DNA from: Saccostrea cucullata
Taxonomy: Eukaryota
Direction of reading: 5' to 3'
DNA length: 64,000 nucleotides
Assembly (NCBI RefSeq): GCF_032062105.1
Contig: NW_026920225.1
Span: 62,001-126,000 of the forward strand
Below the pieces are notes generated by a model. The model did not search any database, was not told where the DNA came from, and saw nothing but the letters and a program-made list of their open reading frames with translations. Position 1 is the stretch's first letter. Each line of letters starts with the position of its first letter. This document shows positions 30,268-49,524 of this stretch, piece by piece. The translations under genes were made by a program, and so were the position numbers.

Positions 30268-33200
30268 CTATGATCGTTTTACATAAGTCTCTTCAGACAT
30301 TGCCCTGGGAAGAGATAAATCATTGCTGTATTCGTTTTCATCTTCGTCATCATCCTCTTGCATGGAGAATGGCCTCACCACCCCAACAGGCCTGATAGAG
30401 TCGGGTTCAGATTGGATAAATGACCGGTAACTGTCCTTGAAGCTGTCTGAAGGTCGCAGACAACCGAGGGCTAACTGCGTGACGTCAGACACGGGGGTGA
30501 AGGACGCTTTAGAATTTAGGTCATCGCTCAGCTTTCCTTCCTCGGGAAAACTTGTCAAGCTGATCTCTTGGGGCAATGGCTGTTGCGTTGTTTTTCTCAT
30601 TGAAGTTGTCTCATACGAAGAAATGTTTGACGAAGAAAAAAGAGAGTTTCTTGATGATTCGCTGTCTCTTTCTCTTGAAAAAGCAGATTCGTGGGAGTTA
30701 ATAGAGAAATTTACTCCTCCAGATGGAAATGAGCTGATTGGTTGAGGCTGTGGATGGACATGACCCTCTTGATTAAATTGACAACTTCCGGATGATGAAG
30801 ATGTCCCGTTCCTTTTATTTGCTGATCTCGACGAATGATTTGAACTTAAGTCGTAAGTCATGTTCCACGATATATTATTTGCGTTTATAGGTATAGGACT
30901 GGGTAAGCTATCTGATGGCTCCTGTAAATGATCTTTATTTGAATATGAAGATTTTGTAGACATGGTTTCGCTATTATGACGAAATGATGACGAAGTGACA
31001 CTATGGTTTGACAAATTTGATTCATGAACTGATGACGAATGTTGATCACGTGACTGTGGCGTACTACTCGAGTATTGAGAGGACAAATTTCCAAAGCTCC
31101 TACACTGTACTTCAGTGGCCACTGGCAAGTCGTGTGGCACTTTTCTATTAATTGAAACGTTTATTTCAGGTTTATTTGATTCATGACTATCTGTAGTACT
31201 TGTATTTGCGGTCACTTTTGCATTTTTTTCATTCACCATTGTGTCATTTTGTTTGTTTTTCGGAGTTGATTGCACCTGAACACCCTTGATGTTTTGTGAG
31301 GCATATGCTGGAGAATCTTGTGTTGTATTTATCGTAGATGAATATTTTGGAGAGTATTCAGACCAATTTGGACGCCGATGTTTCGATGATTCGGTTACGG
31401 AGTATTCCAGGGAGGAAAAGTTGAGGTCAGGTGCCCCTTTCATGCTAATTGGGGACGAGGAACTGTCAGATTTGTTTGATACAGACCGACTATAGTTAAC
31501 ATTACACTCCCTTGCAGAATGTCCGCTTGTTTTTCGCGGCTTGATCTCCTCACCAACATTTGGTATAGAATGTTCCACCGGGGAACGAGATGGATTTCTG
31601 CGCGATTCAGAATGATTTAAACCGTTTGACGGGCTCGATTTGAAATCCCCATTGCTTTCGTTACTGGCGTATGCCGAGTCTGGTGCACTTCCATGATGTG
31701 TAGTTCCATGATGTGTAGAGCCATTTTTCCTGGCATTTGAGAATTGAAAATTGTTGTGTGGTTGACCTGAATAATCAAAATAATCGTTATATTCAGTATA
31801 TTTCGAATCTGGAGTTTTCTGCGCAGACGAGCCAGACCTCCAAAACGAAGAATCTCTATTTCCATTTTTTGAAGGCAGTTTACTTATAATGTTTTCGTAC
31901 AACCATTTGATATTATCCTTCAAATTTTCCTTCTCAATCCGCAGTCTTTTTTTGACCACCGGCTGGAGAATGTTAATGACTGAATCTTGGCACAGAATGT
32001 CGTCTTTGCTGAAAAACTCTATAGATCTTAAGCACTTAATTCCCATGGGGATTCTGTATTTCGCTTTCTTCGGGTTGTGCACTAGAATCGGAACAATGGT
32101 GACATTTTTATTGTACATAGCTTCTTGGAAGAAGGGTTGTCCAGCCAGAACAGGCCATTCGTCAGCACAAAACTCTGGTGTCACTAACAGAAACCCCATT
32201 GCTGCCGAAACAATTTTTTGCTTTCTTGTTCTGAACTTCAATAAACCATTAGACTCGTTTATGGGTGTCCACAAGTCTCGTTGATAAATTTCAATTTTGG
32301 GTTCATATCGGGACAATACTCTCTTCAAATATTGCAGAACTTCTACTACTATTGTGTGGTTTTGAGTATGCGCAAACAATATACAGTCACAGGCGACATT
32401 TGAAGAATAGTGATAAATAGATTTTTTCCAAACAGATTCTTTGACTGCTGCAAATAAATCAACCTTGCGGGTTGATTCTGGATTTAACCACCTTTCCATA
32501 GCAGACTTGTCAATGCCATTTTCAAGGAGCTTTTCGTGTATAAAATAATCTGAAAAAAGATTATGGATGCATGATCACTGATCAGATATATGAACAACCT
32601 TTTGGTCAGTCGGTCTTTTGGTGGTTATTCTTTTATCTTTTTTACCTTTTCCTCAATCTCAAACAATTTTCAAGCAAAAAAATTAGTATTACACAAATAA
32701 CAAATTTATTCATCGGGGAGAGATTCAAGGGGGGAAACATTGTGAGATTTTGAGCCTTGCTATATAGCTACATCTTTTCATCTTAATTGTTTTTAATCCG
32801 CCAAATTTTGTCTATATATATCTATGTTTATTTCTGGGTTCATGCAGGGCGTTGGATGCAAATTCAAGGGGTGGGTGGGTACAGCCATACATTTTCAGTT
32901 TAAGGCAATTTAGTAAATAAAAAAGTTTCTTGACCAAAAAAGGGGGTCATCAGAGGTACTATATAGTATTATTAAGGGGCACGAGTGGGTGTATGCTAGC
33001 TATGTTTTCTTTAGTGTTCTGTATATCGGCCATGAAGTTGTACATAAGGAAAAATCTGCAAATCTACCTTTTCTATTTATAGTAAAAGTTACTTTGTTTA
33101 TCATTAGATGGATCGTGAGGTCACCACTGTGTATATGCCTGATACTGACAAAGAGGTTAAAAAAAAGACGAGATCGAAACACACAAACTAATGATTGCAA

Positions 33201-47800: not shown

Positions 47801-49524
47801 TGCCCTCAATCAGTGATTCATCCGACATTGTGGAGGACTGTCCGGGGTCGGAGACAGGTACAGACAGGGACAGTGCGGAGTATGTAACCGTGCATAAAGA
47901 GGACGTAGAATCGTACTCAGAGAGCCTAGGAACAGATGTTGACAGTGGCTTTAGTGAGTATAAAATTTCTTCATTTATATTATACCCAAGATTTTCAAAG
48001 TTCAGTACAAGAAAATATTTTTTTCTCACTGAAAATCTACAGGCATTGTCTCAAGTGTAATTGATTTCCTTTTAAGAGATCTCAAAATTGTAAAAGAAAA
48101 CTTTTGAAGATTTTACTCGATATTCTAACTCTTAAACAGTAAAAATTAATTTACTTTTCTTTGGTATGTGAGAATAAATAAAACTGATTTATAAATAGAA
48201 ATAAAATTTCTTTCAGTGCTGACAGACGTAGAAAAAGAGTTGGATTGTGTAAAGAAGGCTATGGAAATGGGATACTTAAAAAGTTGCATCAAACAAGCTT
48301 TGAATAAATTGAGTGCTAGAGGTAACATGACTTTTGTTTTCAACTTAACCTTACTTTTCTTAAACTTTAATACTTGATTCATTTTCAAAGACACAACTAT
48401 ACAAGATATTTTATCCACCCTTATATGCTAATACGTATTTGTGAGAGCTAAGCCTGAGTTTGAGAGCTACCTTATGATACATATGGTGCTACAATCCTGT
48501 GATGCATCATGGTACAGCTTTCGGCAATTAAATCGGCTGATATCGGCCTAATTTTGGGTCCTTTGGACATTATTTTTCCCCCAAGATTTACTAAATTTAA
48601 TATTGTAACTTTCACAGGTAAAACAGTGGACATTAACAGCTTGCTTGATGAAATGCATAGAATAAACATTGAATCAACTTCACCAGAGTCAAGTAAGAAA
48701 TGAAAAAGAATATTAATATTGAATGGTTCTCTTTAATACCGGTATGGAGTCAAGGATAGACAAATCTCGATTTCAATCCCAATAAGTTTCATGTCACAAA
48801 TGTCTTCTCAAACTTTTACCTCCTGGTTTTGGACATTATTTTTAACCCCCCTATATACGAAGTTTGTATATAGGAATCACCTTGTCCCTCTGTCCGTATG
48901 TCTTTGCAAACGTTTCACAGGTCCATAACCATTACAGAGGGACATTAAAGCTACTACTCCACACAAAAATTGCCCATGACCTAAGGGTGTGTCATAACCT
49001 TGACCCAAGGTCATTTGGGGAAGTTCAAGGTCACTGGAAGAAAAATTTCATAATTCGTGTCCGGTCCATATCTTTCTTATGGATAAACTTGGTAGGTTCT
49101 CATTTCACACAAAGATTGCCCATGACCCAAGGGTTTGTCATGACCTTGACCCAAGGTCATTTTGGGATGTTCAAGGTCAATGGAAGAAAAATTCTTTCTT
49201 ATGGAAAAACTTACTTCTGAAAAACCCAATTTGTCCCTTTTGGACAGTTTTTTTCTTTAGAGAAGTCTGTATATATAAATTTTAAAGTTCTATGAATACA
49301 GATTATCTTTGCCATTCCATGTCATATTTTCAAAACTCTGTCTTATGCATTTTTTTCCAGCAGATGTAAACCCAGATTGCAAGATCTCAAAACAAGCGCA
49401 GAAAACCTCCAGCAAATTCAGTGATAAAAAATCACATGACAGCAAATCAAATGACACAAACAGCAGACAAAAATCTGGAATATTGCAGAAATTTTTCAGT
49501 AACTTTACGAAAGGTGGAAATTGA
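41839..49524 (+). CDS. TRIF/TICAM-like adaptor: TIR + coiled coil + RHIM-like motif + UBA-like domain (~872 aa)
   Basis: ACCACCATG at 41839. Exons 41839-41923, 45541-46849, 47073-47953, 48217-48321, 48618-48692, 49361-49524 join in frame (2619 nt). TIR: YYDVMILYAEDD...CTFAFIYLTKKF...ESIYNPKKKWCVVPVY...IPMGLNAL. RHIM-like: YNIANAENVAIG. UBA-like: VKKAMEMGYLKSCIKQALNKL...DINSLLDEM. Confidence 0.88.
42153..42763. mobile_element. TIR MITE with internal palindromic repeats
   Basis: TGCCCTGTTCACA...TGTGAACAGGGCA flanked by TTAA (or TA). Internal duplicated block CGTTCACACGGGGAATTTAATATGAATTAGTTTAATTCGAATTAG. Confidence 0.8.
43424..43598. mobile_element. Tc1/mariner (pogo/Tigger-like) MITE
   Basis: TA-CAGTAAAACTCG...CGAGTTTTCCTG-TA. 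Confidence 0.8.
43608..43845 (-). mobile_element. Bivalve SINE with TSD
   Basis: (GATT)n tail at left, tRNA-like head at right, TSD TAATAGAAA at 43599-43607 and 43846-43854. Confidence 0.85.
44169..45511. mobile_element. Non-autonomous PIF/Harbinger-type element
   Basis: ~40-bp TIRs GGCC...AAAAATA.CTTTGTTTCCCCTAAC.CGACC with a TTA TSD on both sides. It ends 29 bp upstream of the TIR exon acceptor. Confidence 0.85.

Follow-up and report, generated by a model that had tools for sequence, protein, structure and literature searches.

A divergently transcribed pair of putative TICAM-like TIR adaptor genes in oysters, one mollusc-wide and one found only in Ostreidae

Do two TIR-domain genes that stand head to head in an oyster genome work as one signalling module, or are they neighbours by descent? 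The question is raised by a 64,000-nucleotide stretch of the Saccostrea cucullata genome (assembly GCF_032062105.1, contig NW_026920225.1, positions 62,001 to 126,000 of the forward strand; hereafter the window, in whose own numbering all positions are given). It holds two divergently transcribed genes, LOC134245220 on the minus strand (768 amino acids, protein P0001; the minus gene) and LOC134245229 on the plus strand (874 amino acids, protein P0022; the plus gene), both of which are annotated as uncharacterised and which together occupy 30268–49524, from the stop codon of the minus gene to that of the plus gene. An earlier note on this DNA had read them as a co-regulated pair of MyD88-independent adaptors produced by inverted duplication. 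Sequence comparison indicates that the two are paralogous TIR adaptor genes of one mollusc-specific TIR subtype. On balance we slightly favour a reading in which the plus gene encodes an ancient TRIF-like adaptor and the minus gene an oyster-restricted protein without a RHIM that would modulate TIR signalling or act as an alternative adaptor, the two being neighbours by descent with independent promoters.

In reviews, TRIF/TICAM homologs first appear in amphioxus (PMC6043800, PMC9440496); no TRIF homolog is known beyond the chordates, and Toll signalling independent of MyD88 is traced back to amphioxus as well (PMC6043800, PMC9440496, PMC6321704). Bivalve cytosolic TIR-domain-containing (TIR-DC) and ecTIR-DC proteins are numerous and uncharacterised and have been proposed to be alternative adaptors (PMC6321704, PMC10279657). 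The oyster pair falls into the same broad class. In the searchable literature we found no paper that names these loci or a mollusc TIR-RHIM protein; a 2017 catalogue of bivalve cytosolic TIR-domain-containing proteins, reportedly by Gerdol et al., lay outside that coverage, and a prior description is possible.

Two divergent genes share a layout and a TIR subtype

The database proteins P0001 (100% identical to the window) and P0022 were mapped to the DNA to give the gene models. RNA evidence covers 34300–40299, which takes in the 5′ ends only, and was drawn from about 45% of each of four runs, three of the oligo-dT type (X21–X23) and one metatranscriptome (X3). In the following features a slash marks a splice junction.

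30268..32549, minus strand: coding exon 2 of the minus gene LOC134245220, with the TIR domain, a helix, a Ser-rich tail and the stop codon (100% identical to P0001; acceptor ttttttcag/AT in the DNA)
32550..34350, minus strand: intron 1 of the minus gene, phase 1 (donor G/gtatat and acceptor cag/AT in the DNA; spliced RNA contig from run X3)
34351..34375, minus strand: first coding exon of the minus gene, 25 nt (MDGIFIDN plus one base), ATG at 34375 (P0001 mapping, DNA)
38900..39028, plus strand: 5′ untranslated exon of the plus gene, start approximate, donor after 39028 (RNA reads; conservation in S. echinata)
41803..41923, plus strand: ATG exon of the plus gene LOC134245229 (ATG at 41839; 28 amino acids plus one base), followed by a phase-1 intron (P0022 mapping; acceptor cag/G, donor G/gtaaga)
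45541..46849, plus strand: TIR exon of the plus gene, with the TIR domain, a charged helix, a His-rich stretch and the RHIM-like motif NYNIANAENVAIGKKATIV (P0022 mapping, AF2 model and Foldseek, orthologs)
47073..47953, plus strand: exon 3 of the plus gene, a polar, probably disordered linker (P0022 residues 463–758; acceptor aag/G; 3′ boundary inferred to about 2 nt)
48217..48692, plus strand: exons 4 and 5 of the plus gene (about 48217–48321 and 48609–48692) and the intron between them, encoding a UBA-like domain (P0022 mapping, ortholog profile; boundaries inferred to about 2 nt)
49364..49524, plus strand: last coding exon of the plus gene, ending at the stop codon (P0022 residues 821–874)

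With the minus ATG at 34375 and the plus ATG at 41839 on opposite strands, the genes are divergently transcribed, as the earlier note had stated. In each, a phase-1 intron separates a short initial coding exon from a large exon that carries the TIR domain, a helix and a polar tail. The phase-1 intron before the TIR exon, likewise described earlier, was confirmed in the DNA of both genes, where it splits the codons G/AT (minus gene) and G/AA (plus gene). This shared layout fits common ancestry, but it is also the usual one in this family. In the minus protein the TIR domain covers residues 60–190 or so and is followed by a long helix (about 193–230) and a Ser-rich tail of about 540 amino acids. 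A long helix after the TIR domain is present in both predicted models, and the tails are 74–77% polar or charged (22% Ser in the minus tail), in agreement with the charged helix and long disordered tail claimed for both proteins.

The two TIR domains belong to one subtype, as had been proposed: the large exons match each other by BLASTP at the same residue numbers (32% identity over 72 amino acids, expect value (E) 4e-13), the motif [FY][KR]IPMG[LI] is common to both, and a single family profile spans both domains from end to end. Together with 17 relatives the two proteins can be aligned over the whole domain, in which an F, a W and two P are invariant. Against Pfam, the plus protein matches TIR_2 below the gathering score (E 0.037, 15 bits, cut-off 28), the minus protein and its orthologs have no match of any kind, and relatives of the same family exceed the TIR cut-off in Mercenaria (34.6 bits) and Mactra (29.5 bits). 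That the minus-strand domain adopts a TIR fold is indicated by an AlphaFold (AF2) model of the N-terminal 220 amino acids (predicted local distance difference test score (pLDDT) 79), for which Foldseek returns the TIR domains of MyD88, TRAM, TRIF, TLR2 and TIRAP at probability 1.0, with MyD88, TRAM and TRIF ranking about equal. This model was built on an alignment that included homologous plus-type sequences and is not independent of them. For the plus model (pLDDT 89) all top Foldseek matches are TIR domains, and TRIF and TRAM take ranks 1–3.

Profiles of the whole family (A1) and of the plus orthologs alone (A4) were run against solved structures. Profile A1 matched human TICAM2 (E 2.5e-9), followed by a bacterial TIR domain (0.002), TICAM1 (0.004), TIRAP (0.016) and TLR2 (0.6); profile A4 matched TICAM2 (E 5.5e-9), TICAM1 (0.09) and SIGIRR (0.41), and no other animal TIR class fell below E 1. 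MyD88, SARM1 and the IL-1R-family chains were worse than E 1 with both profiles. Because of these matches, and because TRIF and TRAM stand at the top of the structural ranking of the plus model, we call the TIR domain of this family TICAM-like; profile and structural ranking together support the term, which the earlier note had used.

TIR domains that act as NAD hydrolases (NADases) use a catalytic Glu, which we take to lie in helix alpha-C, four residues after a conserved Trp (WTEYEL in 7uxr). In the profile alignment to 7uxr, a bacterial NADase TIR domain, this column holds Ser in the plus protein and Ala in the minus protein. Consistent with the earlier observation that neither protein has this Glu, and with the scaffold role drawn from it, both are predicted to be non-catalytic, scaffold-type TIR proteins.

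The plus gene is the putative ortholog of a mollusc-wide adaptor gene

Orthologs of the plus gene, 750–1200 amino acids in length, occur across bivalves and gastropods. They were found in oysters (Magallana gigas LOC105344431, C. angulata and S. echinata), in other bivalves (three Mytilus species, scallops, Solemya, Potamilus, Mercenaria and Mactra) and in gastropods (Haliotis, Patella, Littorina, Batillaria, Babylonia, Nucella, Physella and Aplysia), and their tree is roughly that of the species. In oysters, the plus gene is the ortholog of an old and strongly constrained gene that occurs in both bivalves and gastropods.

The TIR exon of the plus gene ends in HHYHHYPEGPG...NYNIANAENVAIGKKATIV. 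In S. cucullata the core of the RHIM-like motif is VAIG (...NIANAENVAIGKKATIV), with Ala at the place where the RHIM tetrad [IV]Q[IVL]G, which is flanked by Asn and hydrophobic positions, has Gln, and there is no Pfam RHIM match. The block is conserved in the orthologs that were inspected (oysters, mussels and the scallop Ylistrum), the core being V[A/I/V]IG in pteriomorphs; a regular-expression scan for it gave no match in Argopecten or Pecten. Canonical cores occur in Haliotis (VVQIGNDNTV), in Mactra (NVQIGDHN) and in the relative P0077, and Potamilus has LQVG. Pfam RHIM is the only motif family that matches the relatives, at scores below the cut-off (E 0.01 in Haliotis, 0.05 in P0043, a relative of the minus gene that is described below). 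The stretch encoded by exons 4 and 5 (VKKAMEMGY...IKQAL...INSLLDEM) is conserved in oysters, mussels and scallops. A profile of orthologs over this stretch (A5) matches the UBA domain of UBAP1 (E 3.6e-4), and UBA-clan Pfam models match below threshold, UBA_6 in 6 of 10 orthologs and UBA in 5 of 10. The UBA-like domain of the plus family is present in pteriomorph bivalves. With moderate confidence, we regard RHIM-like and UBA-like as fair labels for these parts of the predicted protein. The earlier statement that one gene alone carries RHIM and UBA therefore stands in part: both are present in the plus gene as subthreshold matches and neither is present in the minus gene, but the core reads VAIG and not VQIG.

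We note that the His-rich stretch that precedes the RHIM-like motif (window 46700–46760, HHYHHYPEGPG) is conserved as far as gastropods (HIHHHHHH, HYHYHYY). In mussels the same TIR subtype is found fused to a trypsin-like peptidase domain (P0019, Mytilus trossulus, L002) and in a protein named after a DZIP3-like HEPN domain (P0034, Mytilus coruscus), two cases that point to domain shuffling of this TIR in mussels. The database name of the Magallana gigas protein P0124 (XP_011450518.3), ‘mitogen-activated protein kinase kinase kinase kinase 4 isoform X1’, looks wrong. A synteny resembling that of TMED7 and TICAM2, suggested by the name of the Mactra antiquata protein P0069 (‘Transmembrane emp24 domain-containing protein 7’), was rejected, as this protein has no emp24 domain; the name was probably copied from a TMED7-TICAM2 read-through entry.

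The minus gene belongs to a lineage found only in true oysters

When 1.84 billion representatives were searched with a profile of the minus family, only four clusters fell below 1e-30, and a gap to 1e-12 followed. All four are from oysters: Saccostrea, Crassostrea virginica (LOC111129142), Ostrea edulis (LOC125652008) and a Logan transcript set. By this search the minus family is found only in true oysters (Ostreidae). The earlier placement of the pair ‘in molluscs’ thus holds for the plus gene, which is mollusc-wide, but not for the minus gene.

The first protein after the gap, the bivalve protein P0043, is the nearest relative of the minus gene outside oysters. It comes from a 21-kb contig of ENA sample ERZ26168041; the same sample also contains P0012, a plus-like protein that is sister to the oyster plus genes. 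In the S. cucullata genome the reciprocal best match of P0043 is the minus gene, with which it has a post-TIR helix motif in common (WLMENV versus WLYENI), and P0043 ends in a canonical RHIM (...NAQHVQIGEHPTII). The RHIM of this relative makes it probable that the minus lineage is older than oysters and goes back to a TIR-RHIM gene whose RHIM was later lost. In a MAFFT alignment the RHIM of P0043 falls on a block conserved in oyster minus proteins, HPQPQP...VQID/ISSF (VQID in a related oyster), and as an alignment suggestion only, this block may be a decayed remnant of a RHIM. An open reading frame of 256 amino acids lies about 300 bp downstream of P0043 and resembles the plus gene in exon layout.

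Selection was estimated from S. cucullata and S. echinata as the ratio of nonsynonymous to synonymous substitution rates (dN/dS, Nei-Gojobori).

Minus gene, whole exon: dN/dS 0.38
Minus gene, TIR: dN/dS 0.26
Minus gene, tail: dN/dS 0.43
Plus gene, TIR: dN/dS 0.01
Plus gene, rest of the TIR exon: dN/dS 0.28
Plus gene, exon 3: dN/dS 0.26

The minus TIR tolerates roughly nine times as much amino-acid change as that of the plus gene, but the minus gene is a real gene under purifying selection. Its very long stem branch and fast evolution, together with the loss of RHIM and UBA and a 5′ exon that went undetected in three RNA runs, could also be read as signs of a duplicate that is decaying and has no function itself. 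Such decay is hard to reconcile with a reading frame of about 700 amino acids that is intact in two Saccostrea species, Ostrea, Crassostrea and a Magallana-like transcript set, with dN/dS values of 0.26–0.43, with 31 alignment columns that are invariant in seven aligned sequences (and more than 80 in a five-sequence N-terminal alignment), or with the existence of spliced transcripts, Logan transcripts from a related oyster among them. We consider decay to be largely refuted and highly improbable.

The minus tail contains blocks that are conserved across oysters (LPVA.EVEC, HPQPQP, VGVVKPFS, an acidic run and NDLS.P..EET.VK), which suggests that these islands could be docking motifs for partners. 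No PxExx[aromatic/acidic] or pLxIS motif was found to be conserved in either protein, and the only match in the motif scan was SSEE, which lies inside the plus TIR helix.

Closer paralogs of the plus gene argue against a simple inverted duplication

The genome of S. cucullata contains at least 10 members of this TIR subtype. At least eight loci match the plus gene better than the minus gene does, leaving the latter as ninth-best, and the minus gene itself scores about equally against the plus gene and against several short paralogs. In the tree a stem of about 3.9 substitutions per site leads to the minus clade, which falls outside a clade of 28 rows of plus orthologs (support 85/98); the tree carried a long-branch warning. 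Forcing the minus genes together with the oyster plus genes cost 7.8 log-likelihood units (approximately unbiased (AU) test, p 0.049), and forcing the minus genes and the P0012/P0043 pair together with the oyster plus genes cost 10.8 (AU p 0.095). The tree does not place the minus and plus genes as sisters, and the constraint tests are borderline. From these data a local duplication is neither supported nor firmly excluded, and the earlier claim that the two genes are inverted duplicates of each other is weakened by the closer paralogs, the position of the minus gene outside the plus clade and the borderline tests.

Two further features of the family were seen elsewhere in the genome. A second divergent pair of TIR exons of the same subtype lies on contig C5699 (205471–205908, minus strand, and 212368–212760, plus strand; loci L009 and L008), about 6.5 kb apart, and head-to-head pairs may recur in this TIR family. 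Three near-identical short paralogs that look as if they consist of TIR only (contigs C8486, C18759 and C10974; loci L005–L007) have in-frame stops at two of the three loci and may be recent duplicates that include pseudogenes.

The pair is kept within a wider syntenic block

The head-to-head arrangement recurs in S. echinata, C. virginica and M. gigas, with ATG-to-ATG distances of 5.4, 2.8 and 4.0 kb, respectively (2.8–7.5 kb across oyster species, S. cucullata included); the neighbour of the plus ortholog in M. gigas is an annotated gene of 678 amino acids. In mussels, the 10 kb around the plus ortholog, and likewise around a paralog, contained no second TIR domain or minus-like neighbour. 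The pair has stood head to head since before Saccostrea, Crassostrea and Magallana split.

The flanks are kept as well. A FERM/4.1-like gene lies beyond the minus gene in S. echinata, and genes for an adaptor-protein (AP) complex sigma subunit and for striatin lie beyond the plus gene in M. gigas; exons of both occur in the window at 54199–55901 and 57302–57673, and their order matches that next to the ortholog in M. gigas. The conserved block thus reads FERM gene, minus gene, plus gene, AP-sigma, striatin. Because the flanking genes are conserved too, the adjacency of the pair needs no functional explanation, and on its own it does not argue for functional coupling. Linkage in relatives, which had been proposed as a check, is present in three other oyster species, but as part of a wider syntenic block.

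Conserved synteny of the whole block would be expected if the two genes were independent adaptors, each serving its own set of receptors, with the minus protein signalling through short motifs in its tail, and with microsynteny inherited. This is a possible explanation, if well short of an even chance in our estimation. The greatly different selective regimes of the two genes, the conserved blocks of the minus tail and the presence of at least 10 subtype members in the genome, including the second divergent pair on another contig, are in keeping with it; however, the shared TIR subtype makes heterotypic contacts plausible, and the minus tail has no conserved effector-binding motif of a known type.

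The two genes have separate promoters

In the plus gene, the 5′ untranslated exon at about 38.9–39.03 kb has a depth of 6–12 in the three oligo-dT runs, and 16 reads (X23) and a contig from X3 pass directly from position 39028 to the beginning of the ATG exon (about 41803). Exon 1 of the minus gene has about zero coverage in the same three runs. Its splice to exon 2 is confirmed because a contig from X3 joins 34351 to the start of exon 2; the depth of X3 contigs there was confined to bins 34300–34699, and the 5′ untranslated region reaches upstream to about 34.5–34.7 kb. The transcription starts (minus exon 1 at about 34.35–34.6 kb, the plus 5′ untranslated exon at about 38.9–39.03 kb) are some 4.3 kb apart on opposite strands, whereas a bidirectional promoter would have starts less than about 1 kb apart. 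Each gene has its own promoter, with some 4 kb between the two, and they do not share a compact bidirectional one. On what is thin evidence, the 5′-end RNA data differ in abundance between the genes and do not favour co-regulation. Between the genes, and outside both, lies one further feature:

37109..37980, strand not assigned: interspersed transposon-like repeat of about 870 bp (at least 40 genomic copies, about 82–86% identity)

Reads over this repeat are partial matches from other copies, and it probably explains in part the wider spacing of the pair in S. cucullata.

These data bear on the module that the earlier note had envisaged, in which local inverted duplication would have produced a co-regulated pair whose RHIM-less protein bridges to the RHIM-bearing effector, as TRAM does to TRIF, or inhibits it. 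The divergent arrangement in four oyster species from three genera speaks for this module, as do the TIR subtype, gene layout and intron phase common to both genes, the RHIM that the nearest outside relative of the minus gene (P0043) has in common with the plus gene, AU tests in which a shared origin with the plus genes of oysters is not clearly rejected (p 0.049, 0.095), and the precedent for inhibition set by amphioxus bbtTIRA acting on bbtTICAM (PMC6043800). It is nevertheless quite unlikely, given that the starts are about 4.3 kb apart with a repeat between them (and 2.8–7.5 kb separates the ATGs across species), that the 5′ exons differ in depth (6–12 versus about zero in three oligo-dT runs), that the flanking genes are conserved as well, that the minus gene is only the ninth-best match to the plus gene in its own genome and lies outside the plus clade in the best tree, and that neither protein has the Gly that is myristoylated in TRAM.

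Three further observations concern the sequence around the pair. Most RNA reads that carry the same species label match the assembly at only 95–99%, with fixed differences (34300–40299, X21–X23), and the animals sequenced for RNA may be from another lineage of the species complex. A tandem duplication (period 127, 2 copies, 90% match) lies at 40979–41231, inside the plus 5′ untranslated-region intron upstream of the ATG exon. Downstream of the minus stop codon, a repeated block at 29026–30011 has staggered tblastx matches in S. echinata (L001 3634–4236) and C. virginica (L014 5679–6311), which in both oysters fall in the intergenic or intron space of the pair; the block looks like a satellite or transposable-element family that recurs around the locus.

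Predicted roles of the two proteins

Under the reading we favour, the plus protein would be recruited to activated Toll-like receptors by TIR-TIR contacts and would then nucleate oligomers of the RHIM type and complexes that depend on ubiquitin, much in the manner of TRIF or amphioxus bbtTICAM. The minus protein, with a compatible TIR domain and no RHIM, would most likely modulate the same or a sister pathway, whether by competition, by regulation or by acting as an alternative adaptor with its own tail as the signalling part. The two would probably not form an obligate two-part machine. We regard the possibility that they are purely neighbours as about as likely as a regulatory relationship.

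Several findings weigh against this reading. A profile made from minus proteins only found no TIR match among solved structures; the minus protein owes its TICAM-likeness to the family profile and to a model whose alignment was mixed. The RHIM and UBA matches in S. cucullata are below curated thresholds, and the RHIM tetrad is without Gln. Scanning both tails for conserved TRAF6, TRAF2, pLxIS and RHIM-core motifs turned up none. The very long minus branch affects tree placement, so that either a local or a distant origin is possible. Finally, in O. edulis the plus TIR was not found within 10 kb upstream of the minus ortholog.

The closest known counterparts are TICAM2 (TRAM) and TICAM1 (TRIF), the nearest solved TIR domains to the family by profile and to the plus protein by structure. 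Like the plus protein, TRIF has a TIR domain followed by a C-terminal RHIM-type motif, and like the oyster pair, TRIF and TRAM comprise one RHIM-bearing and one RHIM-less paralog. The differences are considerable. TRIF has an N-terminal domain (TRIF-NTD), a conserved pLxIS motif and a TRAF6 motif, none of which was found in the plus or minus protein by Pfam and motif scan, whereas the oyster plus protein has a VAIG core and adds a UBA-like domain. TRAM has no counterpart of the minus tail of about 540 amino acids, and its N-terminal myristoylation Gly is lacking from both oyster proteins, which start MDGIF (minus) and MSSRS (plus), so that TRAM-like bridging, one of the roles first suggested, finds no support here.

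Another counterpart is found in amphioxus, where, as summarised in PMC6043800, bbtTICAM is a TIR+RHIM adaptor that activates NF-kB via a RIP-type partner and is restrained through binding by bbtTIRA. Compared by description only, bbtTICAM resembles the plus protein as an invertebrate TIR+RHIM adaptor, and bbtTIRA is a second TIR protein that restrains it; the text available to us reports no genomic linkage of the two amphioxus genes. Drosophila IMD and PGRP-LC are likewise invertebrate NF-kB signalling proteins with RHIM-like amyloid motifs of degenerate core, but they have a death domain and a PGRP domain in place of TIR, and molluscs have been reported to be without Imd and RHIM-bearing PGRPs (PMC9835746).

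A bolder extension, which we think unlikely, is that molluscs possess a TICAM-type TIR-RHIM lineage representing a TRIF-like, MyD88-independent arm that predates chordates, together with a RHIM-less oyster derivative that would bind the TIR domain of the plus protein and tune its output, an independently arisen partner of the TRAM or bbtTIRA kind.

Implications

A mollusc-wide TICAM-like TIR adaptor with a RHIM-type motif would challenge the view that TRIF homologs are confined to chordates, and it makes the plus gene a concrete candidate for antiviral or cell-death signalling in oysters. An iridovirus of bivalves encodes a CARD+RHIM protein that resembles bivalve sequences (PMC12452177), a hint that a pathway of this kind is worth attacking. 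The fast-evolving minus gene, found only in oysters, would offer a natural experiment in the evolution of a RHIM-less adaptor paralog.

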